DNA of 64,000 bases, taken from contig NC_088795.1 in NCBI RefSeq assembly GCF_011386835.1, positions 144,646,001-144,710,000 of the forward strand. The letters are read 5' to 3'. The DNA is from Chrysemys picta bellii (Eukaryota). Positions 1-46,651 of this stretch are shown here, piece by piece. Each line of letters opens with the position of its first letter. The stretch's first letter is position 1. The notes below the pieces were generated by a model. It made no database searches and was not told where the DNA came from. It saw only the letters and a list, made by a program, of their open reading frames with translations. The translations under genes were made by a program, and so were the position numbers.

Positions 1-849
1 CAGCCTCGGGCACCCCAGTCACGGGGGCAGGTGTGGGGAGGGCACAGAGGGTCTGGAGCTGCAGCCATGTCAGAGCGAGGGGGAATCCACACCCAGGCTC
101 CAGGGCACCAGGGGAGGGCCCTGGGGTCAGGAAGGAATCCACCCTTTCTCCCAGGCCCGCTGGCCAGGTAGCAGCTAAACTCCCATTGGAGAGGAGGCAG
201 GGAGATCCCAGGGAAGGCAGCCTGAAGGCAGCCACAGGGAAGGGGCAGGGCCCAGCGTCCGAGGGCGGAGCTGGCAGGTCCCGGGGGAAGACACAGGCTC
301 CTGGGAACCAGCACAAGGGCTGGGAGATGGGAAGCGGTGCCAGGAGCCGCCTTGGTTGCTGAGCCCAGGCTGCCTGGGCCAAACGCGGAGCAGGGGGTGG
401 GCCTGGCCCCCCCCCAGCATGAGGGGGGCATAGAAACCAGGGATTCCCCCACACCCCCCTGAATTTCCCCAGCCCCAGTTTGTGAACTAGTTACATGCAG
501 TGTTGCCAATGTAGTGATTGGACATTTGAATTGAAAATGAAACATTAATACACACTTTAAAAGCATATACAGGGTGTGATAAAATACGCGGATCTGAAGA
601 AGTGTCACAGATTTGAAAAGTTTGAACCCAGACTCGCTTCCTTCTACGGCTGCTGTTTGGATGACAATGTCAGGGCATTCATTCCGGTGCTGTTGGCCAA
701 CCTCATCATTTCAAACGATGATTTGTAAGCGAAGTCTAAATGAGCGCTCCCTGACCGCTAGTGATGGGCTGGGGCTGGGGAGAAAGGCTTCCGGACCAGA
801 TTGTGTTTACATTCGTCTGGGGGGTAATGAAGTGTTGTTCTTATAGTAC

Positions 850-1360
850 GAGTAAAGGGTAGTAGAACTGTACGTAGCCTGTGCTGATAGAGGGCATCAA
901 GAGAGAGGGTGGGGACCTGTCCCTCTCCACTGTTTAAAGACAGAGCTGATTAGACTCCACAGATCGTCTTTTGTTTTGTTACAGCTGAAATCACTGATAA
1001 TCAGGTCTAAGTGCTTAGTCCTGCTGTGGGACAGTGTTTCTGCGGAAGGGACGGCCCAGACTGCACTAGCAGTGAGGTTCCCCCACTGAGAGCTCAGCTG
1101 AAATCACTGAGATCTGGTGGAACCTCAAGAGACCAACTCGCAGAGGTCACAGTGGCAGGTGGCAGCAGAAGGTGACGGCGCAGGGCCATTGGCAACAGAG
1201 CGATGGAGTGAACGGTGGCACAACGAACAACAGTGGCCAGAGCGAACAGTGAGCAGCTGGAGGAACAAGCAAGGTACCTTCTTGCCCCCCACCTGGGAGG
1301 TGAACTCACGGGAAAGCACCTCTGAACTCTGAGTCTCCACTGACCAAGGACAACACCACC
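850..1360 (+). mobile_element. Probable LTR-derived fragment nested in the hAT element
   Basis: Non-coding segment resembling recurrent turtle LTR sequence (GGTGAACTCAC..AAAGCACCTCTGAACTCTG..CACTGACCAAGGACA) as I recall it. Boundaries not resolved. Confidence 0.4.
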
Positions 1361-2313
1361 GAGTGTTAATGAGGCTGTTAAGAATGCTGGAAACACAACA
1401 CAGTTCATGTGAACAAACATGGCTGTGGCATCCTACTTTCTATTTAAGCAAGAGATACCACACACTACAAACTGGAGGCCAATGTTAAGTGCATTGCCAC
1501 TTGTTCATCTTGAAGTTGAACACTGGTTCCGAACAAGACCAGCAAATGCTCACTATCTTTCTGCAAGAAACTCAACTGACTGGCTAGAAGCATGTGGTGC
1601 AACAGTGAAAGACTCAACAGTTGAAAAAGTGAAGAACTCTCTCACCACATTCAAAAAATTCGCATACATGGCTGATGAATGCACCGATGCAAATGGGCAT
1701 CAAGTATTAAGACGTGTACATTTTCTTGATGTCAGTGGTAGTCCAGTAGATGCATTTCTAGATGTTCAAGTTATAGAAGACACAGCGGCTGCATCTGTGA
1801 CAACCCACATCTTAGAAGAGTTAAATGCTTGTCAATTGGACCCCAAACAGATGGCTGCTTGTGCATTTGATGCAGCTGCAAACTTCTCTGGAAGACATGG
1901 TGGAGCACAAGCTTTGCTCAGAGAAAAGTGTAACCCTAATCTCTCCTATACGCACTGCGGAGGCCATCTACTCCAACTAGCGCTAGTACGAGCTGCAGAC
2001 TCTTCAAAAGACATTAAAAAAGCTATAAACTTAATGTCTTCATTATATTCTTTTTTCAGCAAGAGTCCAAAAAGACTGAGTATCTTGGAAAATATAGAAG
2101 ATACACTGGGACTGAAGTTCAAATTAATCCAACCTAGAAAAACGCTCTGGCTTTCTCATGAGCGATCCTTGGCTGTTGTCTTAAAATTACTCCAGCCATT
2201 AGTGCTGGCTTTGGAAAGTATCTACCAAGATGGGACGGATCGAAGGAGTGAGGCTGGTGGATTACTTTTGCTACTACGTTCAGAGAAGACTATTGCCATT
2301 CTCTCTCTTGTAA

Positions 2314-2494
2314 GGGGGGGAGGGATAGCTCAGTGGTGTGAGCATTGGCCTGCTAAACCCAGGCTTGGGAGTTCAATCCTTGAGGGGGTCACTTAGGGAT
2401 CTGGGGCAAAAATCTGTCTGGGGATTGGTCCTGCTTTGAGCAGGGGGTTGGACTAGATACCTCCTGAGGTCCCGTCCAACCCGGATATTCTATG
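2314..2494 (+). mobile_element. Tortoise Pol III / Cry-type SINE (tRNA-derived head, CR1-derived 3' tail)
   Basis: GGGAGGGATAGCTCAGTGG A-box head, GTTCAATCC B-box, tail GGTCCC..CCAACCC..ATTCTATG. It splits the transposase reading frame, which resumes at about 2495. Confidence 0.9.
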
Positions 2495-3630
2495 AAGTCT
2501 ACTATTGAAATCACGTGGGTCATTAAACAAGGCCATCCAGGCATCTGCTACAACAGTATTAGATCTTTGTCCAGCAATAGAAGCTACATTTGGATCAATC
2601 AGAGAGCTACCCATTGAACAAGTACTGGAAGAAGCAGACTTCAGTCCCAAAGTTGACTAATGAAGGCATTTACATTGAATCCCTAAGTGAAGAGGACAAG
2701 AAGTGTTTGTTAAGACAACTGAAAAAGTACACAGACTTGATTCTTACAAATCTACAACAGCGACTTCTAGATTCTACTCAACCTCTACGTAGCTTTTACA
2801 GATCCCTGTCCTATAAAACACCGACAGTTGAGTGGAGTGCGGCACTTCCAGCAATGGGGCTGCCATGTGCTCAGGACAGAATAGAGAATTTGAACACAGA
2901 GTGGAATATCATACGACGAATGAATGAAGATTTGACTTCAACTTCTTTTTTATCATCACTAATGGCTCAACCCGATCTCTGTGCTATGTTTCCTGGGATG
3001 AAAGAAGTAGGAATTCATCTCTTGCTCCTCCCAGTCATGACAGCTACAGTTGAGCGTTCTTTTTCATCACTGAAGTTTGTGTTCTGAAAGAAGTCGCCTT
3101 CTGCCTGATCATGTGACTGACCTAATGAGCATATCAATTGAAGGAATGGAAGTACCGGACACACGAGAAGCCACTGAAGATGAAAGCGTTGCATTCAAGA
3201 AGTTCATTAACAGAGTTGTGCAAAATTATAACTAGAAACCAAGAAGGACGTAGACGTAGTGCTTCCTAGAAGGCTTGAGTAGCCAACTTTAATTTGTGTG
3301 ATGATTTTAAAACATGACTTAAATCTACTAAAATGGTCATGAAACATTTCAGTTTTTACTATGGTGCCATACAGCCGACCTTCACCCTCACGGTCTCACC
3401 TCTCATCGGCCCTGATCTCCCCCCCCCCCCCCCCGCCATAAATTCAAACACCTCCCCCCCCCAATTTCAATTCCTGGGGAAAACACTGGTAGAAACCCAA
3501 CCCAAGGACTGCCGAGCCCAGGGCAGGGTGAGGAGCGGCCCGAGGGGGCGACGCTGGGACTCGTTACCTGGTAGGGATCTGGCCTAGGTGCCATGGCAGG
3601 GCCAGAGCTGAGCAGCACCCGGCGGCATAG

Positions 3631-4448
3631 TGTGACAAAGTGGGAGATTTTCTTGGTTTTCCAATGGTTTGCATGCAGAGCGGGTGGGACTCAGTTTCCC
3701 TGGGTGTTACTGGTTTAACAAGGGAGGGGAGAGGGAGTTTGTGGTTACAGAGGACCAGCGAGGGAACTCGGGACCCCAGCCAATGGCCTGGAGAATGGAG
3801 ACCCCAGCGACTGGGGACCTGGCGACCCGGAGGCCCAGCCGGTTCTGGCCAGTGGGAGGACAATGGGCTGCAAAGAGAGGACCCAGTGACCTAACCAGCC
3901 AGTTCCAGGCAGAGGACAGAAGCGAGGAGAGGAGGCCCCAGTTTACAACCCTGTTTACCTGGAGAGAAGACAATGGACAGAGGCGGGGCTTGGGGCCGGG
4001 ATCTCAGATGCCCATCTGGGGAGCAGGGGGGCTCTGGGCTGGAGAAGGGGAGCAGGCAGAGCCCACCTGGATGCAGAGAGACTGGGGTGTGCTGGGCTGA
4101 GGGAGGCCAGGCCTGAGGCCCTGAGAGTTTCCTGTGCTGTGTTCAACTCTCAATAAACCCTCCTGTGTTACGCCGGCTGAGAGTTGCTCCGGGGTAGAGA
4201 ACAGGGTTGGGGGGGGGGGGCATTATTCCCTCTAGGAGTGGAGGCCCCGGGGGTCCAGAGCGAGTGGACTCCGAGGGGGCCCACAGCAGAGACAGACGTG
4301 CTAAGGCTCAGAGAGGTGCGGCTCCAGGAGGTGGAGGAGCCTGACCCTGAGAGAGAGTGGACCCCCGAGAAGGGCTGTCGCACTGAAGGGGGTTCCCCCC
4401 ACGGACTGCACGGGGCCAAGAGTGGGCACGACCTGTGAGTCCGTGACA
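3631..4448 (+). mobile_element. Solo LTR (Gypsy/ERV-like)
   Basis: Begins TGTGAC and ends GTGACA, about 820 bp, with CAATAAA near 4151. No clean TSD seen. Confidence 0.7.
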
Positions 4449-7085
4449 CAGTTTCCAAGGCCAGGAGGGACCCTCGTGCTCACCAGTCTGAACCCACAGA
4501 CAGCCCAGGCCTGGGACCTGCCCCCATTCAGCCTTGCAGCAGAGCGCTTAGAAAATCGGCCGGTCTGGACAGAGAAATGGCCTGGGATGGAGACTCCCCC
4601 AGACCCCTGGGGATACGGGAGCAAGGGCTCATTGCAAATGGACCCCTTCTTGCCAGGCTGAATTTGTCTGGCTTCAACTCCCAGCCATTGCACCGTGTTC
4701 AACCCTCCTCTGCTGAGATGTCCCCCCAGGCAGGTACCTACAGATTGGTACCTGAGCCTATTCTCCGTGACGCCAACTCCACTGAGCTCCCGGAGTCTCT
4801 CACTATCCGGCAGGTGTCTAACCCTACAGGCATTCCCGGGGCTCTTCTCTGACCCCTCCCCAATGGCTCAACCTCCTTCCCGAACTGGGGGCGCAGGCCT
4901 GCAGCAGCGGTCGCCTGATGACCTGACCCCGGCCGCACAGAGCGGGGCCAGGCACAGTGCAGCAGGGCATGCTGGGATTGGGCCGAGGGGGGGGAGGGCA
5001 TTGGTCCCATCACAGGGGCGAGACTAGGAGAGCCCACTGGGCTGATATTCCTGCACGTGCCCCGCCCAGCCCCCAGACGTGGCAATGGGGGAGTCACCTG
5101 CACAGCCCCGATGGCCCTACGGCCACAGGTGGGGCCTGGCAGACACCCGCTTGCCCCTGGAAGTGACATGGCCCAGACCTTGCCCTGTGCCAGGCAGGCA
5201 ACCAGACCCTGCCCACACGTGCAATCTCACGGGACGGGACAGGACCCGCCCCGGGGAGGCGCATGCGACTGACTCAGCGCCCGGCCGAGACACAGAACCC
5301 CCCTCCCCCGCCGAGACACAGTGCCCCCCCCCACCCCAACACACACACACTCACCCCGAGCCCACCAGGTCCTGGCATCCCAGCGCCAAGCTCTAGTGGT
5401 GGCAGAAAACACAGCCGGCCGCAGGCCCCAAGCCCCCACCCCCGCCAGCACCAAACCCTGCCCCCGCCAGCGGAGTTGGGGGTGGGGGTGATTTCCTTCT
5501 TCACAAATCTTGTGCTGCCGTCAGGAAATAAGCACTGGTTGCTAAGCCACTATCCATCTGCCCCACATTCCCCAGGCCCCTGCCAGCCCCCAGCACAGCT
5601 GGGAAATGCAGCAACCCAGGGCCAGAGAAAGGATCGGGGCCGGAGGTCCCGTCTGCCTCTCTCCCGTTTCATAAGTCACTGGGGTGTGGGGAGTCTGTAG
5701 GGCTGGAAGCGAGTCTAGACACTCCCCAGTTCCAGTTCACTGAGCGCTCCCCACCCCGTGACCCAGCACCCCACAGCGGCCCCAGTCCCAACAGGGTAAC
5801 ACCAGCTGCCCCCTGAAACTTCACAAGTCCCACGGATTGAAGACCAGAGTCCCCAAAGCACCCCCCCAGATGGACACGCCCCCCAGTGCACCCCATGAGC
5901 CAGGCCTGCAGAGAACGGTTGCACAATCGCTCCCCAGAGGGTGCGCTGCCCTGAGAAACCAGCCCAGACACGCCCGGCACAGCACGATGCAGCGACGTCT
6001 GCCCGAGCTGCCCCATTCCCCTCCCCAGGGTGTTCACTCTGCACCCGTGTGAGCACTTCCAGTATCAAACCTTTCCGTGACCGCCCAGCTCCCCTATGGG
6101 GCGCAGTGCTGGACAGAGTGGGGGCCATGGGAAAACTCTCACAGTTTTCGGTGGGGGGGATGAGGAATTTAAGCTCCTAGATTTAAGTCCCCCCATCTCT
6201 GTCGAAGAGGGGAGGAGAAAATCAGCCCCAGCCTGGAGCCCTGTCGCCACCGGACCTGGTGCCTGCCCTGAGGGGGCTGCACATTGGCACGAGCCTCCTG
6301 CCTGCTGCACAATCCCCCGCAGGGCAACGCTGCCCCTCATTTGCTCCTCCTGGGCAAGAGACTCGCGCCCACCTGCCTCAGGCTGGCCAAGCTGAGGGGC
6401 CGGGGCAGGGCACAGGCCCGTGAAACACACGTGCACATCACCATGCAGCACTCCAGGCACCGAGCCCTCACTTACAGCAGCAGCGCGCCAGATGCTAGGA
6501 GAAAGGAGCCCAGCCTGCCCGCGGGCACCGCCCTGTTGCTAGGTGTGCCAACTCTCACCACACGCCAGGGGTGGGCCCGGGGAGGTGCCTGCTCCAGCCC
6601 TGGCCTGGGGAGATGCCCAGCCCCGCCCCTGCCCAGGGCCCAGCCCAGCGAGGTGCCCGGCCTCCAGCCAAGGGTGATTCCCAGACAGCCAGGGATGGGC
6701 ACAGGCTGAGCAGGCCCCTGGAGGAGATGCAGGGATGGTCCCACGTCAGGAACAGGCCCTGGGATCCAGCCCCAGCCAGGGCAGATCTGCTCCCCACCCT
6801 TGAGGTGCTGAGCCCTCCACACCGGGGCAGGGGCAGGGGCAGGGCCTGGCAGACACTCCTTCAGGCCTGCAGCGTGGCTGGGGGCGGAGCAGCATCCCCC
6901 ACCCCCGCCCCATGGAGCCTGTAGGTGGGTTTGTGCCTGTGTCCCGTGTCTCCCTGGCCTTGCCCCATCCCCTCGCCAACCTGGTCTGGCTCTCTCATCC
7001 CCCTCAGCCTGCCCCCCGAGCCCATCAGCCCAGCTCCCGCCCTGCAGCGTCTCCGCGGGCGCCCCCAGGTCTCCCTGGCACTCAC

Positions 7086-7109
7086 TTTGCCGATCCTGCA
7101 GATGTCCAT
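7086..7109 (-). CDS. RTKN: Candidate alternative first coding exon of RTKN (MDICRIGK)
   Basis: Strong Kozak context (agcATGg) and consensus donor AAA|GTGAGT in phase 0, like the other two RTKN first exons. Lies about 330 bp downstream of a MEF2/E-box cluster. No transcript evidence. Confidence 0.5.
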
Positions 7110-7434
7110 GCTGGGAGCTCTCAGCTGCCTGTGGGCTCCCCCTCCTAGCCGCGTGCCCCCAGCATGCCAGCGCCCCAGCCCATCGCCCCCAGCCTGCGCA
7201 CGGCTCCGGGAGCTGTGCAGCGCTGGCCTGGCGGCTGACGAAGGGCTAGGGAGAGCTGAGCAGTGCGATGCCAAGCTCCCTGCGGAGCCGGCGCTGGGCG
7301 CAGGGGAGGGAGGGGGCCGGGGAGCCGGCAGGGGAAGGGGGAGCAGCAGGAGCTGTTTCCCGGCAGCTCCAAGGCTGAGCCGGCAGCTCCAGCAATTCAC
7401 ACCATGGAGAGCGTGGAGGAAACGGTGACATCAC

Positions 7435-7567
7435 CAGCTGGCTATAAATAGCATGGGGGGGGGCAGACAGCTGCACTGGCGAGGGGGATGGACAGCTGCC
7501 TCCTTTCCCAGGTGGGGGGGGGGCACAGCTGCAGCCACCAGGGTGAAGCCAAGAGGGGGAGCAGCTG
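7435..7567 (-). promoter_or_regulatory. Muscle-type regulatory module: MEF2 site plus six E-boxes
   Basis: CTATAAATAG (MEF2 consensus YTAWWWWTAR) at 7442-7451; CAGCTG at 7435, 7468, 7493, 7526, 7562; CAGGTG at 7509. Confidence 0.65.
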
Positions 7568-9061
7568 CCTCCCACCCCCAGCTCGGGAGAAAGTGATGGG
7601 GGGGCTGAGGCACCCCAAGGGGCGTGGGCAGAGGGACCCCTGGCAGGAGGCACTCCCCACCCCCGCCCTGGTCACAGGGAGCACCCACCGGATGGGCTCG
7701 CCTTGGAGGTGGGGCCCCAAGACAAACACAGGGTGTCCGGGGAACGGATCCCCCCGACCCCGAGAGGCAGGGCAGGGCGGGCGGGACAGTCTGGCCCTAC
7801 TCCGGGAGGGATGGCCAGGTGACGGTGTGGGGAGGGGTACTGGAGGGCAGGGCAGGGGTGGGTCTCCCCCAGCTATGGGGGGCATGGTCCCCACCCCTTG
7901 GCGCTGGCTAAGCCAGTTGTGTTTGGTCTCATGCTGCCTGGGACCTAGAGGTGATTAACAGCCGATTTGCTAATAGGATTGCTCAGTAAATCCCGCGGGG
8001 GGGGGGCGGGTAGAGCTGGACAGACACTGGGTTTCCCCCTGCCCAGAGTCTCACCAATTCCACCCCCTCCCTGGCAGGACAGCTCAGCTCAGCAGAGGGG
8101 GCTCTCCCCCTCCCCCTGCAGCGCTGGATGGTCACAGGTTCAAATCTCCCCTGTCTGGATCCTGACTCAGAACCAACCCCTCCCTTGGCAGGACACGGAC
8201 ACCAAATCACAGGCCTGGAGTGAGTGCCCGGCCAAGGGCACCGTGGGGCTCCCCAAAGGCAGGGACACAGGATCCCCAGCGCCCCAGGAAGGGAAGAGCA
8301 GAGCGGATGGAGAGCCCAGGACGGGGTGAGGAGACGTGCACAGAGGGGGGAGGCCAAAGAGCAGGGCAGGAGGGGCCTATACCCAGAACTCCCTGCAGAG
8401 CTGGGAGGAGCAGAGCGGCACAGCCGGGGGAGAGGGGCCTGGAGAAGCAGAGGCTAACGGGGAGGGATCTCGGATTAGGGGGCTCTGGCTCACAGGAATC
8501 ATTACACTAATCTGTTGCACCGGGGAGGGGGGAGACCCAGCCCTGGGGAGGGGGAGCAGCACCTGGCCGGGAGCGACTCAGCCCTGGGAGACGCCTTTGG
8601 GGGCAGGGGCACTTGGCGCTGAGGCGGTGCGCCCCCTGCAGGCAGAGTGGGGGCCCAGCTCCTTGTCCTGCAACGGGGACTCCCCCAGGCCCCCAGCTCC
8701 TGAGCGCACCCGGCTCACGTCTCCTCCCTCCTCTGCACCCCCACTGCCCAGGCGCCGCTTGCCCCCCCCCCCCGCTCTCCTGGATCCCCGGGCACCCCAC
8801 TGGCTCACACACGCCCACGGCAGCCGCCCCCTTCACAGGCACAGCCACGACCGACCGCCGACGTGGAAATCAGGAGCAGACAGCGCCTGATTAAAAGCAG
8901 CTTGGAGAGCCCGCAGCCAGGACCCCCTCCCCCAGCCCGCAGGGGGAGAGAGCAGAGTCCCCACAGCGCCAGCCCCTGGCTGCCAGTGTCCCCCACCCAG
9001 CAACGGGCACAGAGGGGAAAGGACGAGCCCCAGGTGACAGTGAGTCATGGCAGATCTGGAA

Positions 9062-9530
9062 AATGAACCCTGAGTCCTGGCTCCCAGCTCCAACCTACCA
9101 GTTCCCACGTCCCTCCCAGAGCTGGGGAGAGAACCCAGGAGTCCTGGCTCCCAGCTCCAACCCACCAGCCCCCACTCCCCACCCAGAGCCAGGGAGAGAA
9201 CCCAGGAGTCCTGGCTCCCAGCTCCAACCCACCAATCCCCACTCCCCACCCAGAGCCAGGGAGAGAACCCAGGAGTCCTGGCTCCCAGCTCCAACCCACC
9301 AGCCCCCACTCCTTGCCCAGAGCCAGGGAGAGAACCCAGGAGTCCTGGCTCCCAGCTCCAACCCACCAGCCCCCACTCCTTGCCCAGAGCCAGGGAGAGA
9401 ACCCAGGAGTCCTGGCTCCCAGCTCCAACCCACCAGCCCCCACTCCTCGCCCAGAGCCAGGGAGAGAACCCAGGAGTCCTGGCTCCCAGCTCCAACCCAC
9501 CAGCCCCCATTTCCCGCCCGGAGCCAGGAA
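9062..9530. repeat. Minisatellite, ~67-bp unit, ~7 copies
   Basis: Repeated GAGAACCCAGGAGTCCTGGCTCCCAGCTCCAACCCACCAGCCCCCACTCC. Translated repeats cycle through reading frames. Confidence 0.9.
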
Positions 9531-10595
9531 CAGAAAATGATCCCAGCGGCTGGGTTTGCCTGAGAGCAGGAAACTGGTGAGCAAAGCCTGCAGCAGCAGG
9601 TTCCGGGCAGTCTGGAGGGCGAGGGCCAGCCCCCGACCTGCCCGCATGCTCCGTGCCGCTGCCCCACTAACGGATGCCCGGACACAACCCGGGTGCCATC
9701 CCCCTTGGCTCTGTGCGCTCCCCGGGGCTAGAGTAACAAGGGCCAGACTACAGCTCCCAGCATGCACCGCTCCCGCCAGCACCAACCAGGCCACTGGGTC
9801 TCCCCACGGGAGCAGACGCATTCGGGCGCATGCTTCGCCCAGGGGCACACGCTGCCAGCCTGGTCTTTGCTGTCAGAGTCTGGGCCCATCCCCTGCACCA
9901 GGCCCCCCTCCAAGGCACCATCCGCCCACGAGCGCCCCGCCAGCCCTGCACACAGGCACTGACGCGAGTCCCTGCCAGGCTGCCCCACAGAGCCAGGCTG
10001 CACGCGCTGCCCCACGGAGCCCGATACATGCAGGAGCCCACGCAGCGCCCTGGAGCCATGCCAGCCTACTCCACCCCAGCCAGGATGCCACACACATTCC
10101 TGAGCTCAGGGCCCCCGCCCACAGGGAGATGCATGCTGCACGCTGACTGGGTGGTGGGAGTCGGGGGTGTCAGAACCCAGGAGTCCGGGCTCCCAGACCA
10201 GTGTTAATCACCTCACTGGGTGATTCTGCTCCAGCGCCAGCCCGAGGCACCAGCTGCCTGCAGCCATGGGGGGCGGGATGCTGCCCCCAGCAGCGCCACC
10301 ACCAGCCAAGCACCCCAAGCACTTCAAAGTCCCAGCAGCCCCTTCAATGCCCGACAGCCCCAAAGCCCCAGGGTCTGCCCTCGCTCGTCCCCTGCAATAA
10401 GGCCCAACATGGACTGGAGCTCAGCAAAGCCAGCCTGGCTCCCTGGACACCCGTGGGGGTAACCATGTGGTCTTGGCACCGACGGGCCACAGGGATCCCA
10501 GGACGGGCAGTCCCCGCGCCCTGCCATGGTGAGTGCCAGGGTGGGATGCAGGAGCCGCCCCCGGACGCTTGGCAGGGGCACCGCGGGAGCCGTAC

Positions 10596-10700
10596 CTGCA
10601 GGCTGAGTGCTATCTGCCGGATGTACAGCATGTTGAGGTCCTCTAGGATCCGAAGCCTGTCCTGCATCTCTGCAAACCTGTCCCTCGCCGCCATGTCCAT
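10596..10700 (-). CDS. RTKN: Rhotekin alternative first coding exon (isoform-b type, MQDRLRILEDLNMLYIRQIALSLQ)
   Basis: Matches the known RTKN isoform N-terminus MQDRL(H/R)ILEDLNMLYIRQMALSL. Phase-0 donor CAG|GTACGG at 10596/10595. Conserved Met at 10667, in-frame upstream ATG at 10700. Confidence 0.9.
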
Positions 10701-11074
10701 GGAACCGGCTACACCCCCGGCCCGGCCCAGTCCCTAGCAGTCCCAGTGCCCCTGCACAGGTGCCGGCTCACCAGGCCACAGCCAATGCCCATGGCCACCC
10801 CGCCTGGAGGGTCAGGTGCAAGGTGCCTGTGAGCGGTGCCCCGAGCTCTGCTCCGCTCTGTCTGAGCGCCACAGGACGGGGCTCCCCGATCTCACCCGGA
10901 GCAGGCGGGTATGTGGGGCAGGCTCGCTGCCTCCTCGCATTCCCCTGCCCCCGGCTGTCTCGTCAGCGGATTCCCAGCCACCAGCCACGGACCCAGCTGT
11001 GAAGAGAAAAGGCCCATTCATCCCAGCCCCAGTACTGCGCATTTTCCTCCCACAGAACAAGCAGCCAGTGTGCA

Positions 11075-11830
11075 GGGGCCAGGGCAGCGCCCCCCACTCG
11101 CAGCCCAGTGCCGGGGGGGGCAGGGGCCAGGGCAGCGCCCCCCCACTCGCAGCCCAGTGCGAGGGGGGGCAGGGGCCAGGGCAGCGCCCCCCACTCGCAG
11201 CCCAGTGCCGGGGGGGGCAGGGGCCAGGGCAGCGCCCCCCACTCGCAGCCCAGTGCCGGGGGGGGCAGGGGCCAGGGCAGCGCCCCCCACTCGCAGCCCA
11301 GTGCCGGGGGGGGCAGGGGCCAGGGCAGCGCCCCCCACTCGCAGCCCAGTGCCGGGGGGGGCAGGGGCCAGGGCAGCGCCCCCCACTCGCAGCCCAGTGC
11401 CGGGGGGGGCAGGGGCCAGGGCAGCCCCCCCCACTCGCAGCCCAGTGCTCGGAGGGGGCAGGGGCCAGGGCAGCGACCCCCACTCGCAGCCCAGTGCTCG
11501 GAGGGGGCAGGGCTCAGGGCAGCGCCCCCTGATTGCAGCCCAGTGCCGGGGGGGGGCAGGGCTCAGGGCAACGCCCCCCACTCGCAGCCCAGTGCCGGGG
11601 GGGGGCAGGGGCCCCCACTCGCAGCCCAGTGCCGGGGGGGGGGGCAGGGGCCCCTGATTGCAGCCCAGTGCCGGGGGGGGGGCAGGGGCCAGGGCAGCGC
11701 CCCCCACTCGCAGCCCAGTGCTCGGGGGGGGCGGCGGGCTCAGGGCGGCGCCCCCCACTCGCAGCCCAGTGCCCGGGGGGGGCGGCGGGCTCAGGGCGGC
11801 GCCCCCCACTTCCATGCCAGTGCCGGGGGA
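11075..11830. repeat. GC-rich minisatellite, ~48-bp unit, ~15 copies
   Basis: Repeated GGGGCCAGGGCAGCGCCCCCCACTCGCAGCCCAGTGCCGGGGGGGCA. Confidence 0.9.
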
Positions 11831-12650
11831 GGGCGCAGGGCAGCCCCACGGCTCGGCCCCACAGCACCCCGCGCACCCCCTCTCCGTGCCCCGCACGGCT
11901 CAACCCGCCCCGTTACCTTCGCCTCCTCCCGGCGCCGGTTCCCCGCTGCCCGCGCCCCGGCCGGGCGGCCCCTGCCCGGCTCCCTCCCGCCCCGCCCCGC
12001 CCGGCTCGGGTTACAGGGGCGGCCCCTCCACGCCGGGCCGCGGGGCCGGGCCAGACCGCGCCGGCTCCAGCCACGGGAGCTGCCCCTCACCCCGGCCTCT
12101 GGCCCGGCCCCGCTGGGCGCCCCGGGGTCCCGCGCGCAGCCCCTGCCTGGGCAGCCTGGCCCGCGGCACCCCCCAGCGGGCGGCCGGAGCCCACGGGGAC
12201 GGGCAGGGAGCGGCTGGGCGCCCGGTGCCCCTGGTTCCCGCCCGGGCCCTGCAGGGGGCTCCCGGCTCGGCCCGGCCCGGGGCTCCCCCTTCTGGTGCAG
12301 GGCGGCCAGGGCCGGCGCCACGCGGCCACTGCGTGGCAGAGCGGAGGGGAGAGCCCCGGGGACCCGGCGCCGGGCAGGGAGAGTCCCCGGCCGGGGCGGG
12401 GTCTGTGCCCATAGGGGTGCAGGGGGTGCAGCGCCCCCGGGGGCCTGGCTGCCGGCCCCGCTCCCAGGGCTTTGCGCCGGGCCTCAGCTCGGGCTTTCAG
12501 CCCCCCCGCTACAAAAGTGTCCAGGCGCCACTGGCGGTGCCCGGCCCTGGCACCCCCCTCCAGGCCCTGCCTTCGCCAGGGGGCTGCGAACCCAGCCCCG
12601 GCCCGGGCTAGCACAGAGGGGCCAGGCAGGGAGCCCATCGGCCAGGAGAC
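11830..12650 (-). promoter_or_regulatory. CpG island, probable internal RTKN promoter with a non-coding exon ending at 11917
   Basis: Very high CpG density; minus-strand donor GAAG|GTAACG at 11917/11916; about 1.2 kb upstream of the isoform-b exon. Confidence 0.55.
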
Positions 12651-12779
12651 AGGTCCCGTCCTACAACCTGCCCCCAAAGCCCAGCCCACACCCTGTCGCT
12701 TCCCCGGGCGGGACAGAGGGGAACGGCCCCCGCATCGGTGCCCAGACCCTGCCCCCCACCCCCACCGTGACAGGGTGCC

Positions 12780-13020
12780 CAGACAGCTCCAAGCTCCCCG
12801 ATAACGCTCAGGCCCCAGACAGCCCCTGAACCCCCAATAACGCTCAGGCCCCAGACAGCCACCGAACCCCCAATAACGCTCAGCTCCCCACACCCCCAAT
12901 AACCCTCATCCCCCAGACAGGCCCCCAAACCCCAAGACAATGCTTAACGCCCAGACAGCCCCCAACCCTCCCCCCCAATAATGCTCGGCCCCCTGATGGC
13001 CCCCGTGCCCCAGAAAAAGC
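12780..13020. repeat. Short degenerate tandem repeat (ATAACGCTCAGGCCCCAGACAGCC..)
   Basis: About 5 imperfect copies visible. Confidence 0.6.
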
Positions 13021-15204
13021 TCAGCGCCCAGATGCCCCCCACACCTCGAGATGACACTCTGTGCCCAGCCTGCCCTCTCTCCTCCTAAGACACGTGGTGC
13101 CCACACAAGGCACCCCCGCCCGCCCCAGGAACGTTCAGCGCTCACACGGTGCTGAGTGTTTGGCATCCAGACAGTGTCCATGTCCCCCCACCCCACCCCA
13201 CCCCACCCCCTCAGGCGCTGACAGCTCTAACCAGGCTCCAAGCGGGACAGGTCTTGTTTGACCAAAGCCCCCCCGCCAAAATTGCCCCCAGAGCCAGGGC
13301 AGTTGTCAGAGACTCCCTGCAACAGGGTCCCAGCTGCATCAGGTGCCACCCGCTGTGGGGGCTGCGGGTTCCAAGCACGCCAAGGGCACCCCGTGGCGCG
13401 ACCCAGAGCCACCAGGCAGGGGTAGGGGATGGCGCCTCCCAGGGACCAGCAGGGATATGAGAGCTCCCTACGGGCAGGAACCGTCATGCCAGGCCACTCC
13501 ACTGTGCCTGGGCTTCGTGCCTGCCCCAGGCCCTCCTCCTACCCCTCCAGTCACCAAGGAGGCAGATGCTGCCCCAGGCGGGTCCGGGAGTGAGAGCCCC
13601 ACCCAGACTCTGGAGCCAAGCACTGAGTGCCAGCCCCAGGCTCCTGGGGCCTCAGACCGAGTGCGCCCAGCCCTGGGCAGCCTGCCAGGAATCCCCATGG
13701 CCCTGAGCAGGGGGCATCAGGAATCCCCAGCCCATCGGCCCCGCACACGGCTCTGGGGCCACCACGCGGCACGCAGCCCCCCCCATGCCACTGTCAGGTT
13801 ACCTTAAAATCCACTGTGGCCAACTGCCCTCTAACCCCTCCCTTTGCAGGCCTTCTGAGTCCATGCCAGACCCACCTAGGCACAACCAGTCCCCAGACAC
13901 GCAACACGGCCCACTGGTCTCCTGGGGGGGAGGGGCATCATCTCCCCCCAGCCCTGCCCCTGGGGAGAGCAACAGGGGGTGGGGGTGATGGAGCCCTTTA
14001 AGGGGGCATCAGTCCGTGGACCTGAGCAGAGGGTTTGGATGAACAGCTGGGGAGGGAAGAACTGGCAAGAGAGAAGATGGGAGTGCTACAGAGGAAGTTT
14101 GCCGATTCCTCTCCCTGCCCCTGGCACAGGCCCTGAAGGCAGCAGAGGTGAAGCAGGCCGAACACTTCCCCTCCTCCCCCACCCCAATGGCCTGGACAGT
14201 AAACCAGGGATAAGGACCAGCCTGGAGAGAACCAGATTAAGGACTCCAGGGAAGATGCCCTGAGGGTCTGCGGCCTGGCAGGAACGGGGACTCCGGGGAG
14301 AGAGCCCTGCAGAGCCTGGGACGGGGCTCAGGGGGTTAGGGCCTGAGCCCAGGGAGGTGAAGAGTTTCCAGTCCTCAGCCTTGAGCCTGGAGGTTGGGTA
14401 GCCTGGAGGGGTGAGAGCCCCCAGCCCCCATGGCACTCTCAAGGCAAACTGGCTGCCATGCTGGGTGTTGCCACGAGGGGCGCTCTGAGGTGGTAAGGCT
14501 GTCACGGGCATGACCCCCAAACCTGTCCCATCCCGCAGCTCCTGGGGTGGCCATAAGAGCTCTCACCTGCACTGATGCTGATCTGCACACCAGGGGGTGC
14601 TCAAACCCACCCTCCCCTCTACAAGGTGGAGCCAGGGAGACACCTGGGCAGGTGCCTGGGGATGGGATGGGTGGGACTAGCAGGCGTGTCCCAGCGCCCC
14701 ATGGGGATTCGATCCTGGAGCCCCTGCACAGAGCTGGCAACTAAGGCAGGGAGGGAAGCCACAGCACGTCCTGGCTCTGCGCGAGTCAGCCTGGGGACAG
14801 GCAGCCTCGAGGTAGGATGTGCTGTGTAGTGTGTGTGCCCTGCCATGCACACACACTACAGCTGGCCGGGAACCCATTCTCCAGTGAGAAATTTCAACCA
14901 ACAAACATTTCTTTTAGTGGGGGGGGGAAATGAATGCGTGAGCAGCTGCAGGTGGATGAATGTCTGCACATGGGCATGGGGGTGGGATTGGTCAGTTGAT
15001 TTTGGGGAAAAGCTATCGCTGTGGGGAAACATTTGGAAGGACCATTTTCTACCAGCTGTAACTCCAACAGCCTGGAGCCAGGGCTGGGCTAGCAGGGGGC
15101 TGCGGGTCGGGATTGGGGGCACCGGCAGAACATGGAGGGAAGGTTGCACAGCCCTTTTGATTTTGTCCGACTGACCCTCTCCCCTGGGGTTTTCCCTGAT
15201 TAGG

Positions 15205-15892
15205 AGTATGGTGGAATATTGTGTCCAGTTCTGGGTACCACATTTCAGGAAAGATGTGGACAAATTGGAGTCCAGAGAAGAGCGAGAAAAATGATGAAAG
15301 GTCTAGAGAACATGACCAAGGAGGGAAGATTGAAAACACTGGGTTTGTTCAGTCTGGAGAAGAGAAGACTGAGAAGGGACATAACAGTTTTCAAGTACAT
15401 AAAAAATTGTTCCAATTAGCCTCTGAGGATAGGACAAGAAGCAATGGGCTTAAATTGCAGCAAGGGAGGTTTAGGTTGGACATTAGGAAAAAGTTCCTAA
15501 CTCTCAGGGTGGTTAAACACTGGAATAAATTGCCTAGGGAGGTTGTGGAATCTCCATCATTGGGGATTTTTAAGAGATGGTTGGACAAACACCTCTCAGG
15601 AATAATAATAATAATAATTTGAGATATCCTATCTCCTAGAACCAGAAGGGACCTTGAAAGTTCACTGAGTCCAGCCCCCTGCCTTCACTAGCAGAACCAA
15701 GTACTGATTTTTGCCCCAGATCCCCCAGTGGCCCCCCCAAGGATTGAGCTCACAACCCTGGGTTTAGCAGGCCAATGCTCAAACCACTGAGCTATCCCTC
15801 CCCCATGGGCTAGCTAATTAGTTCTGCCGTAAGGGCAGGGGACTGGACTAGGTGACCTCTCGAGGTCCCTGCCAGTCCTACGATTCTATGAA
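15205..15892 (+). mobile_element. 5'-truncated CR1 LINE 3' end, interrupted by a SINE
   Basis: CR1 ORF2 C-terminus (..[41 protein letters not shown]..) and terminal GGTCCCTGCCAGTCCTACGATTCTATG. Confidence 0.85.
15600..15804 (-). mobile_element. Cry-type SINE (variant tail with (ATT)n end)
   Basis: Reverse complement of the GGGAGGGATAGCTCAGTGGTTTGAGCATTGGCCTGCTAAACCCAGG head, with an (AAT)n tail. Confidence 0.85.
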
Positions 15893-16994
15893 CACACACA
15901 GCCAATGGGGCGGGGCGGGGCTGGGCTGGGCCTGGGCCGAGCCGACGGGCAGTGGTGGCACTAGGCGTAAGCACACTAAGCAATTGCTTAGGGCCCCGAG
16001 CCGCTCGCAGGCTAGCGAACAGGAGCAGCTAACGGGGAGTTTTGCAAAGAAGTTAAGAGGAGCAGCGTGGCGGGGGGGGGTGGGGGCTAGGTGCAACTTA
16101 CCATTCTTTAAACTTAAAAGCCAAAAACACCCCGCTACAAACAAAACAAAGGAACAAGGTGCAGGAGTGAAAAGAGAATGCAGGCAGAAGTCCAGCAACA
16201 CAATGGGGGCTACCCAGTTTATTGCACCCAATGCAGCATGTCAGTTTATCTGCCCTATGGGCGGGTGGCGTATGTGTGCGTGCGGTGCAAGGAGCTCCTG
16301 GCCCTCAGAGACCATGTACAAGCTTTGGAGACCAGAGTGGCTAAACTGGAAGCTAAGGGAGACCGAGAGATACATAGATTAGACTTTCTGGGACACCGTA
16401 GAATGGTCCCACCCCTGGTCTGACAGCCTCTGTGCTGTTGAGGAGGATGAAAGTCTCAGGGAAGGAGAACATCCAACAAGAGCAGAGGGAAACGATCGAG
16501 GTACATGTAGGTACCAATGACATAGGGAAGGATAGGAGAGAGGTCCTAGAGGCCAATTTTAGGCTGCTAGGTAAGAGATTGATGTCCAGGACCTCCATGG
16601 TAGCATTCTCTTAAATGCTTCTAGTTCCACAGGCAGAACTGCAGGGTCTCAATGCGTGGATGAGATGATGGTGTAGGGAGGAGGGGTTTAGATTTATTAG
16701 GAACTGGGGAAACTTTGGGGAAAGGAGGAGCCTATACAGGAAGGATGGGCTCCACCTAAACCAAAATGGAACCAGATTGCAGGCACTTAGTTTAAAAACT
16801 GCTCTACGGTCTTTTTAACGTTAAGGGCTGGGGGGAAAGCTGACAGGTGCAGAGGAGCACGTGGTTCAGACAGAGACATCCCTTAGGGGAGGATCTATTA
16901 ATGGAGATTCTCTATGTCCTAGTAAGGAGGAGAGGAGGGAAGATGATAAAATACAGGTAGAATCTGATGAGAAACAGTCAAATGACAGTATCAG

Positions 16995-23840: not shown

Positions 23841-23951
23841 CTGGGGGGTGTCCCCGAGGAGGCTGAGTCTGAAGTGGCCCCTCCGGATCTCCATCTCCAG
23901 GGCTGAGCCCCGCGCCACCGTCACTCGGCTCCGGTGGTTCCGGCAGAACAT
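23841..23951 (-). CDS. RTKN: Rhotekin first coding exon (isoform-a type, MFCRNHRSRVTVARGSALEMEIRRGHFRLSLLGDTPQ)
   Basis: Close to human RTKN MFSRNHRSRVTVARGSALEMEFKRGRFRLSLFSD; 111 nt; phase-0 donor CAG|GTAGGA; inside a CpG island. Confidence 0.93.

Positions 23952-42847: not shown

Positions 42848-46651
<3,804 letters not shown>

Follow-up and report, generated by a model that had tools for sequence, protein, structure and literature searches.

The analysis presented here concerns 64 kb of the painted turtle genome (Chrysemys picta bellii, contig NC_088795.1, positions 144,646,001 to 144,710,000), which we call the window and whose own numbering we use throughout, and in particular the alternative first exons of the rhotekin gene, RTKN. 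The gene is identified by window positions 1-16000, which match C. picta bellii CM062322.1 at 100% within the rhotekin gene range. On the RTKN strand (minus) the exons follow in the order 1A, 1B, 1C and 2, an order common to Chrysemys, Emydura, alligator and lizard. Exon 1A (23841-23951, minus strand; 37 codons) matches C. picta rhotekin X1, and exon 1B (10596-10700, minus strand; 35 codons) is an open reading frame (ORF) ending in a GT donor, its 35-residue peptide being 97% identical to Emydura macquarii rhotekin X3 in a search of a representative library. Exon 2 was searched for within the 64-kb window and not found; it is located in the same genome 776 bp to the left of window position 1, where its acceptor (ctccccag/GAC) is of phase 0 and its peptide starts DTDIQKK. 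We interpret the segment 7086-7570 (minus strand) as a conserved alternative promoter with its first exon, the third of its kind in painted-turtle RTKN and here called exon 1C, and are highly confident that exon 1C is used. The RTKN loci compared with that of Chrysemys were those of Emydura, alligator, Hemicordylus (lizard), kiwi, tufted duck and Arvicanthis (rodent), the mammalian genomic comparison being with Arvicanthis alone.

The identity and frame of exon 1C are directly observed. Its coding part (7086-7109, minus strand) consists of an ATG and seven further codons, MDICRIGK, ends in phase 0 and is followed by the splice donor GTGAGT (7080-7085, minus strand); the ATG at 7109 lies in the context cagcATGg, with A at -3 and G at +4. 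The start codon, strong Kozak context, peptide and donor described in an earlier note on this DNA are therefore all present at 7109-7080 of the minus strand. That note had also held that the phase-0 donor fits the shared RTKN exon, and since the exon 2 acceptor is itself of phase 0, the junction of exon 1C with exon 2 of the same genome is indeed in frame. The junction peptide it had put forward, MDICRIGK followed by DTELQ, holds as to frame and fails as to sequence, for exon 2 here reads DTDIQ; DTELQ is the mammalian form of the exon 2 start. The start codon and donor are conserved across species: all seven compared have the purine at -3, the G at +4 and GTGAG at the donor. The Rho-binding HR1 repeat of the short isoform begins at residue 11, three residues past the exon 1C/exon 2 junction, and the 35-37 residues encoded by exon 1A or 1B are missing.

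Exon 1C among the rhotekin models of other species

It had been proposed from the turtle sequence that RTKN has a further first exon with a promoter beside it, possibly unannotated. The exon and its promoter are borne out by annotated 8-codon isoforms in many species and by motifs conserved above their surroundings; the notion of an unannotated isoform finds no support, since an identical MDICRIGK stands in RefSeq for Malaclemys terrapin X5 (XP_053884868.1), with close variants in other turtles and alligator. We surveyed rhotekin isoforms by word searches and by cluster listings (15 of the 54 members of the cluster were listed), and the short-start models found in this way are predicted models, silent on tissue. 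Among them, those of Mauremys, Gopherus and Dermochelys have the first-exon peptide MDSCRIGK, that of Chelonia X7 ends in the same eight residues (..MDSCRIGK) behind an in-frame upstream extension, Emydura macquarii X5 (XP_067389663.1) starts MDSCRIGR/DTDIQ and Alligator mississippiensis X4 (XP_019342888.1) has MDSCRLGR, so that one to two substitutions separate the window peptide from those of other turtles and alligator. The peptide is still recognisable in lizards (MENGRLAK in Anolis, MENGRVAK in Hemicordylus), in ducks (..MDRRGTGN in the Anatidae, the ducks, geese and swans), in salamanders (MESRRSCK in Pleurodeles) and in rodents (MDGAREGS in Peromyscus X3, ..MDRAREEA in rat X2), and an unannotated counterpart, MDGCGTGA/gtgagt, was found in the fetched RTKN locus of kiwi.

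Exon 1C thus shares with the annotated short-N-terminus isoforms an 8-codon first coding exon of the type M-D/E-x-x-R-x-x-K/R, a phase-0 splice to the exon that opens HR1, and a location between exons 1B and 2; the evidence for the splice junction is drawn from these database proteins. The 8-codon exon of teleost rhotekin (MNNTKNQR in Danio rerio, NP_001119887.1) resembles it in length, phase and splice partner but is barely similar in peptide. A corresponding first exon, MNNSKNHR/gtaagt, occurs in European eel (our locus L006:2001-3024), and the 1 kb upstream of it contains no MEF2 site, no CAGCTG and no TGATGTCA; homology of exon 1C with the teleost exon is not claimed, the eel upstream region showing no motif similarity. 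What we describe is no new gene, isoform or regulatory principle, and the short isoform is already in databases for sister species.

The promoter region of exon 1C

The most conserved block of the region, 7354-7453 (minus strand), runs from an A/T-rich 10-mer (the MEF2/TATA element described below), extends ~70 nt into the presumed transcript and is 90-96% identical to Emydura, against 30-66% in its flanks; conservation peaks from the 10-mer onward in the downstream direction of RTKN and drops on the other side. Over the ~25 kb that separate exon 1A from exon 2, no non-coding sequence matches alligator more strongly than 7453-7315 (E = 1.7e-25), whose match is comparable in strength to those of coding exons. 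Since an Rfam scan of the whole window returned no match, no intronic RNA gene explains this conservation. The ratio of observed to expected CpG is 0.14 in 7421-7620, 0.51 in 7086-7420 and 0.66 at exon 1A, so that the exon 1C region stays below the threshold for a CpG island (observed/expected > ~0.6); CpG depletion is typical of tissue-restricted rather than housekeeping promoters.

The 10-mer at 7442-7451, CTATAAATAG, is the single CTAWWWWTAG in the 64 kb, where 0.04 would be expected. On the gene strand (minus) it reads CTATTTATAG, a sequence that agrees with the high-affinity MEF2 consensus YTA(A/T)4TAR and doubles as a TATA-like element; the perfect, TATA-like MEF2 site on the RTKN strand reported in the earlier note is therefore real and unique in the window. 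All ten positions of CTATTTATAG, including the outer C and G, are invariant in five turtle, crocodilian and bird species. It is the sole such consensus in the whole fetched locus of alligator, kiwi and duck, and in Emydura, where it lies at the same offset, the sole one inside the gene. In kiwi a second, partial copy (GTTATTTATGG, L005:7905-7925) abuts the MEF2/TATA element on its upstream side, as if the A/T core had been duplicated locally. MEF2 is sensitive to the outer C and G of CTA...TAG, and TBP is not.

A second element, TGATGTCA (7426-7433, minus strand), is a match to sequences of the basic leucine zipper (bZIP) type that resemble the cAMP-response and TPA-response elements (CRE/TRE), and is the most deeply conserved element of the region: GATGTCA is invariant in seven of seven aligned amniotes, rodent included, and no other promoter element is invariant all the way from turtle to rodent. 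The spacing is conserved as well, GCTATTTATAGC lying 17-18 nt ahead of TGATGTCACCG in both turtles, alligator, kiwi and duck. A TRE of the c-Jun/ATF2 type, TGACATCA, occurs in the c-jun promoter. TGATGTCA is the reverse complement of this octamer, but is here a sequence match alone, placed between a TATA-like element and the presumed start site. The ATG inside TGATGTCA (window 7426-7433, minus strand; L008:10681-10688) opens an in-frame ORF in some RefSeq models, being the start codon in Chelonia X7 and rat X3, while the coding sequence of rat X2 and Arvicanthis X1 runs through TGATGTCA. In Chrysemys and kiwi the corresponding upstream extension lies out of frame, and in alligator it is interrupted by a stop, for which reason this N-terminal extension is probably not conserved coding sequence.

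Around and upstream of these two elements, 7435-7567 holds five CAGCTG E-boxes and one CAGGTG, all where the earlier note had placed them within 135 bp. From the most distal inwards, the first two CAGCTG boxes (7562-7567 and 7526-7531), the third (7493-7498) and the fourth (7468-7473) are identical at the orthologous positions of Emydura, and the CAGGTG/CACCTG box (7509-7514) is not conserved, Emydura having GACCAG. The fifth CAGCTG (7435-7440), between the MEF2/TATA element and TGATGTCA, is kept in lizard, reads CAGCCG in alligator and has lost 1 nt in Emydura. Five CAGCTG in 135 bp are reached by 0.1-0.8% of random placements of the window's sites and have a Poisson probability of 4e-6 against the rate of the RTKN locus. 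Moreover, the four upstream boxes are identical between Chrysemys and Emydura in 24 of 24 bases, whereas the other 117 columns are 64% identical; on the assumption of independent sites the chance of such identity is ~2e-5. Counted within 200 bp, where 0.2-0.3 would be expected, CAGCTG occurs five times in Chrysemys, four times in Emydura and three times in alligator (in the same 200 bp, at shifted positions), and twice in lizard; the count is zero in kiwi, duck and rodent. Four of the boxes lie within a repeated GGGGG..ACAGCTGC unit at a spacing of 25-36 nt in a region of 66-70% G+C, and a search of the E-box cluster with Tandem Repeats Finder gave no array.

The leader carries two upstream open reading frames (uORFs). 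The 2-codon uORF ATG GTG TGA (7397-7405, minus strand), to which the earlier note had drawn attention at 7405, is present in the painted turtle and not conserved, its ATG being GTG in Emydura and absent in alligator. The other, of 12 codons (MGWGAGMLGARG*; 7145-7183, minus strand), terminates in a conserved GCTAG that lies ~36 nt ahead of the main ATG, and short uORFs with their stop at the homologous TAG occur in Chrysemys, Emydura, alligator, kiwi and the lizard Hemicordylus. This common end suggests translational control of the short isoform.

Elsewhere in the locus, two large G+C-rich tandem arrays flank exon 1B. The one in the 1B-1C intron (9065-9535) has 7 copies of a 67-bp unit with 94% matches, and that in the 1A-1B intron (11072-11834) has 16 copies of a 48-bp unit with 89% matches. 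Two non-coding blocks, 8861-8933 and 11001-11093, are ~80% identical to collinear positions of alligator RTKN and may be other RTKN regulatory elements. A lower-G+C insert (1419-3087 and 15221-15622, plus strand) contains long plus-strand ORFs of 325 and 165 aa and another of 133 aa that resembles by eye the tail of a CR1-type retrotransposon. None of the three has a Pfam match, so that they are presumably remnants of transposable elements. Runs of N occupy 43117-43255 (139 bases) and 43262-43519 (258 bases).

Putative drivers and history of the exon 1C promoter

Considering a potential mechanism, we infer a start site, factor binding and a tissue as follows. Judging from the position of the TATA, transcription would begin near 7415-7425, about 30 nt past the TATA-like MEF2 element; a leader of ~310 nt would carry the short conserved uORF, translation would start at 7109, and after eight codons a phase-0 splice would lead to exon 2. 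The resulting protein would be a rhotekin with its HR1 repeat three residues after the junction and without the residues of exons 1A and 1B. From its motif content the promoter, which is CpG-poor and apparently of the TATA type, as expected of a tissue-restricted promoter, is predicted to be activated by MEF2 together with class II basic helix-loop-helix (bHLH) factors. We consider it likely that the promoter lies directly at the MEF2/TATA 10-mer. On balance we incline to the account as a whole, that is, exon 1C with a start near 7415-7425, MEF2/bHLH activation and striated muscle as the most likely tissue; that exon 1C expression is dominated by muscle, as the earlier note had proposed with good reason from the motifs, we put forward tentatively, as a possibility that falls a little short of being probable.

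The classic skeletal-muscle promoter has a tight cluster of CAGCTG boxes beside a high-affinity MEF2 site where the TATA box would lie, and in Xenopus MyoDa a MEF2 site reportedly occupies the TATA position. With the skeletal-muscle promoters and enhancers composed of MEF2 sites and MyoD/myogenin E-boxes the exon 1C promoter shares a perfect CTA(A/T)4TAG in the TATA position, four to five CAGCTG within 135 bp, a CpG-poor context and a partial evolutionary retention. It differs from them in that birds lack the E-boxes and lizard and rodent the MEF2 site, and in that its conserved boxes are all CAGCTG, a form used by neural bHLH factors too. The invariance of the outer C and G of CTATTTATAG, taken with the selective preservation of the CAGCTG boxes, speaks for an action of MEF2 and class II bHLH factors at this promoter in turtles and alligator.

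Several observations weigh against so simple a muscle interpretation. The MEF2 site is absent from the lizard and rodent loci, both of which retain (T)GATGTCA alone, and both birds have kept the MEF2/TATA element with no CAGCTG within 200 bp; the comparison therefore indicates that only turtles and alligator have the complete 'muscle module'. The Chelonia X7, rat X2 and Arvicanthis X1 models have coding sequence through TGATGTCA, so that at least some transcripts start upstream of the site predicted from the TATA. Additionally, CAGCTG is bound by neural as well as by myogenic bHLH factors, and MEF2 is active in neurons. Our literature search found no paper joining Rtkn and MyoD and no description of a muscle RTKN promoter. 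Rhotekin mRNA has been reported from skeletal muscle, brain, kidney and lung, and the protein as being most abundant in brain, in several developmentally regulated bands (PMC6073136). The legend to Fig. 5B of a rat muscle cap analysis gene expression (CAGE) atlas refers to alternative Rtkn start sites (PMC8235325), and the supplements searched for that paper do not mention Rtkn.

It is against this background that a neuronal use of the same exon and promoter has to be judged, in which MEF2A/C/D would act with proneural or NeuroD-type bHLH factors and exon 1C would encode a brain isoform. The abundance and developmental regulation of the protein in brain, the established sharing of CAGCTG by MyoD and neural bHLH factors, and the failure of the MyoD-preferred CAGGTG (7509-7514) to be conserved in Emydura all speak for such an isoform; four to five CAGCTG boxes clustered tightly beside a MEF2 site at the TATA are, however, the muscle arrangement, and the mRNA in skeletal muscle and the alternative starts in the CAGE legend point the same way, although both of these arguments are still compatible with brain. 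We regard the neuronal explanation as unlikely. Slightly less probable still, in our estimate, is a broadly used TATA-type promoter keyed on TGATGTCA, where the 10-mer would serve as a TATA box only and the E-boxes would modulate expression without restricting it to a tissue. Such a promoter would agree with the invariance of GATGTCA alone from turtle to rodent, with birds that have the 10-mer without E-boxes and with a rodent and a lizard promoter devoid of the MEF2 site, but it leaves unaccounted for the invariance in five species of an outer C and G relevant to MEF2 and not to TBP, the perfect retention of four upstream E-boxes while their spacers decay, and a CpG depletion (0.14) typical of restricted promoters.

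The Chelonia, rat and Arvicanthis models have coding sequence that extends through TGATGTCA or lies upstream of it. In these models such coding sequence is incompatible with a start 30 nt past the TATA-like element, and would instead be in keeping with the MEF2/E-box block being an intronic enhancer of the upstream RTKN promoters or of a neighbouring gene, with exon 1C starting further upstream and the TATA position incidental. We think this very unlikely, considering that conservation peaks from the 10-mer onward (90-96%) and falls on its other side, as expected of a core promoter and the 5' end of a transcript, and that the in-frame extension upstream is not conserved as coding sequence. As to a functionless chance cluster of motifs or a decayed G/C-rich minisatellite, it is suggested by four boxes 25-36 nt apart in the GGGGG..ACAGCTGC unit and by the 66-70% G+C, but the E-box cluster yields no array in Tandem Repeats Finder, the boxes stand at orthologous positions and are selectively preserved in a turtle of the other suborder (Pleurodira), and the adjoining exon is annotated in many species. 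We give this explanation almost no credence, contradicted as it is by box retention in Emydura and by the turtle-alligator match of the promoter.

With muscle-directed activation by MEF2 and bHLH factors as the preferred interpretation, the comparison across species indicates different ages for the parts of the promoter. The exon and the TGATGTCA core are ancient and found in mammals too, the MEF2/TATA element is, in the loci aligned here, common to turtles, crocodilians and birds, and the CAGCTG cluster is, as far as these alignments extend, kept in turtles and alligator. Conservation of the MEF2/E-box cluster, which the earlier note suggested checking, is therefore partial: it extends to the MEF2 site in turtles, alligator and birds and to CAGCTG in turtles and alligator, and not to the CAGGTG box, the E-boxes in birds or a MEF2 site in lizard and rodent. 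We suggest, as a speculative and rather doubtful extension, that an ancient amniote promoter around TGATGTCA might have been rewired, with MEF2 gained at the TATA position in the turtle-crocodilian-bird lineage and the CAGCTG battery in turtles and crocodilians, turning the short isoform into a striated-muscle Rho effector there and not in mammals or lizards. If true, this would be a datable re-targeting of a promoter without a change of protein.

Finally, rhotekin is a widely used Rho effector whose isoform biology is almost undescribed. Three alternative first exons of RTKN are conserved. The shortest of them puts eight residues ahead of exon 2, and the history of its promoter is layered, an old TGATGTCA core being followed by a MEF2/TATA element gained or kept in turtles, crocodilians and birds and then by the E-box cluster of turtles and alligator. 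This history leads to a testable hypothesis of tissue-specific Rho signalling in sauropsid muscle.

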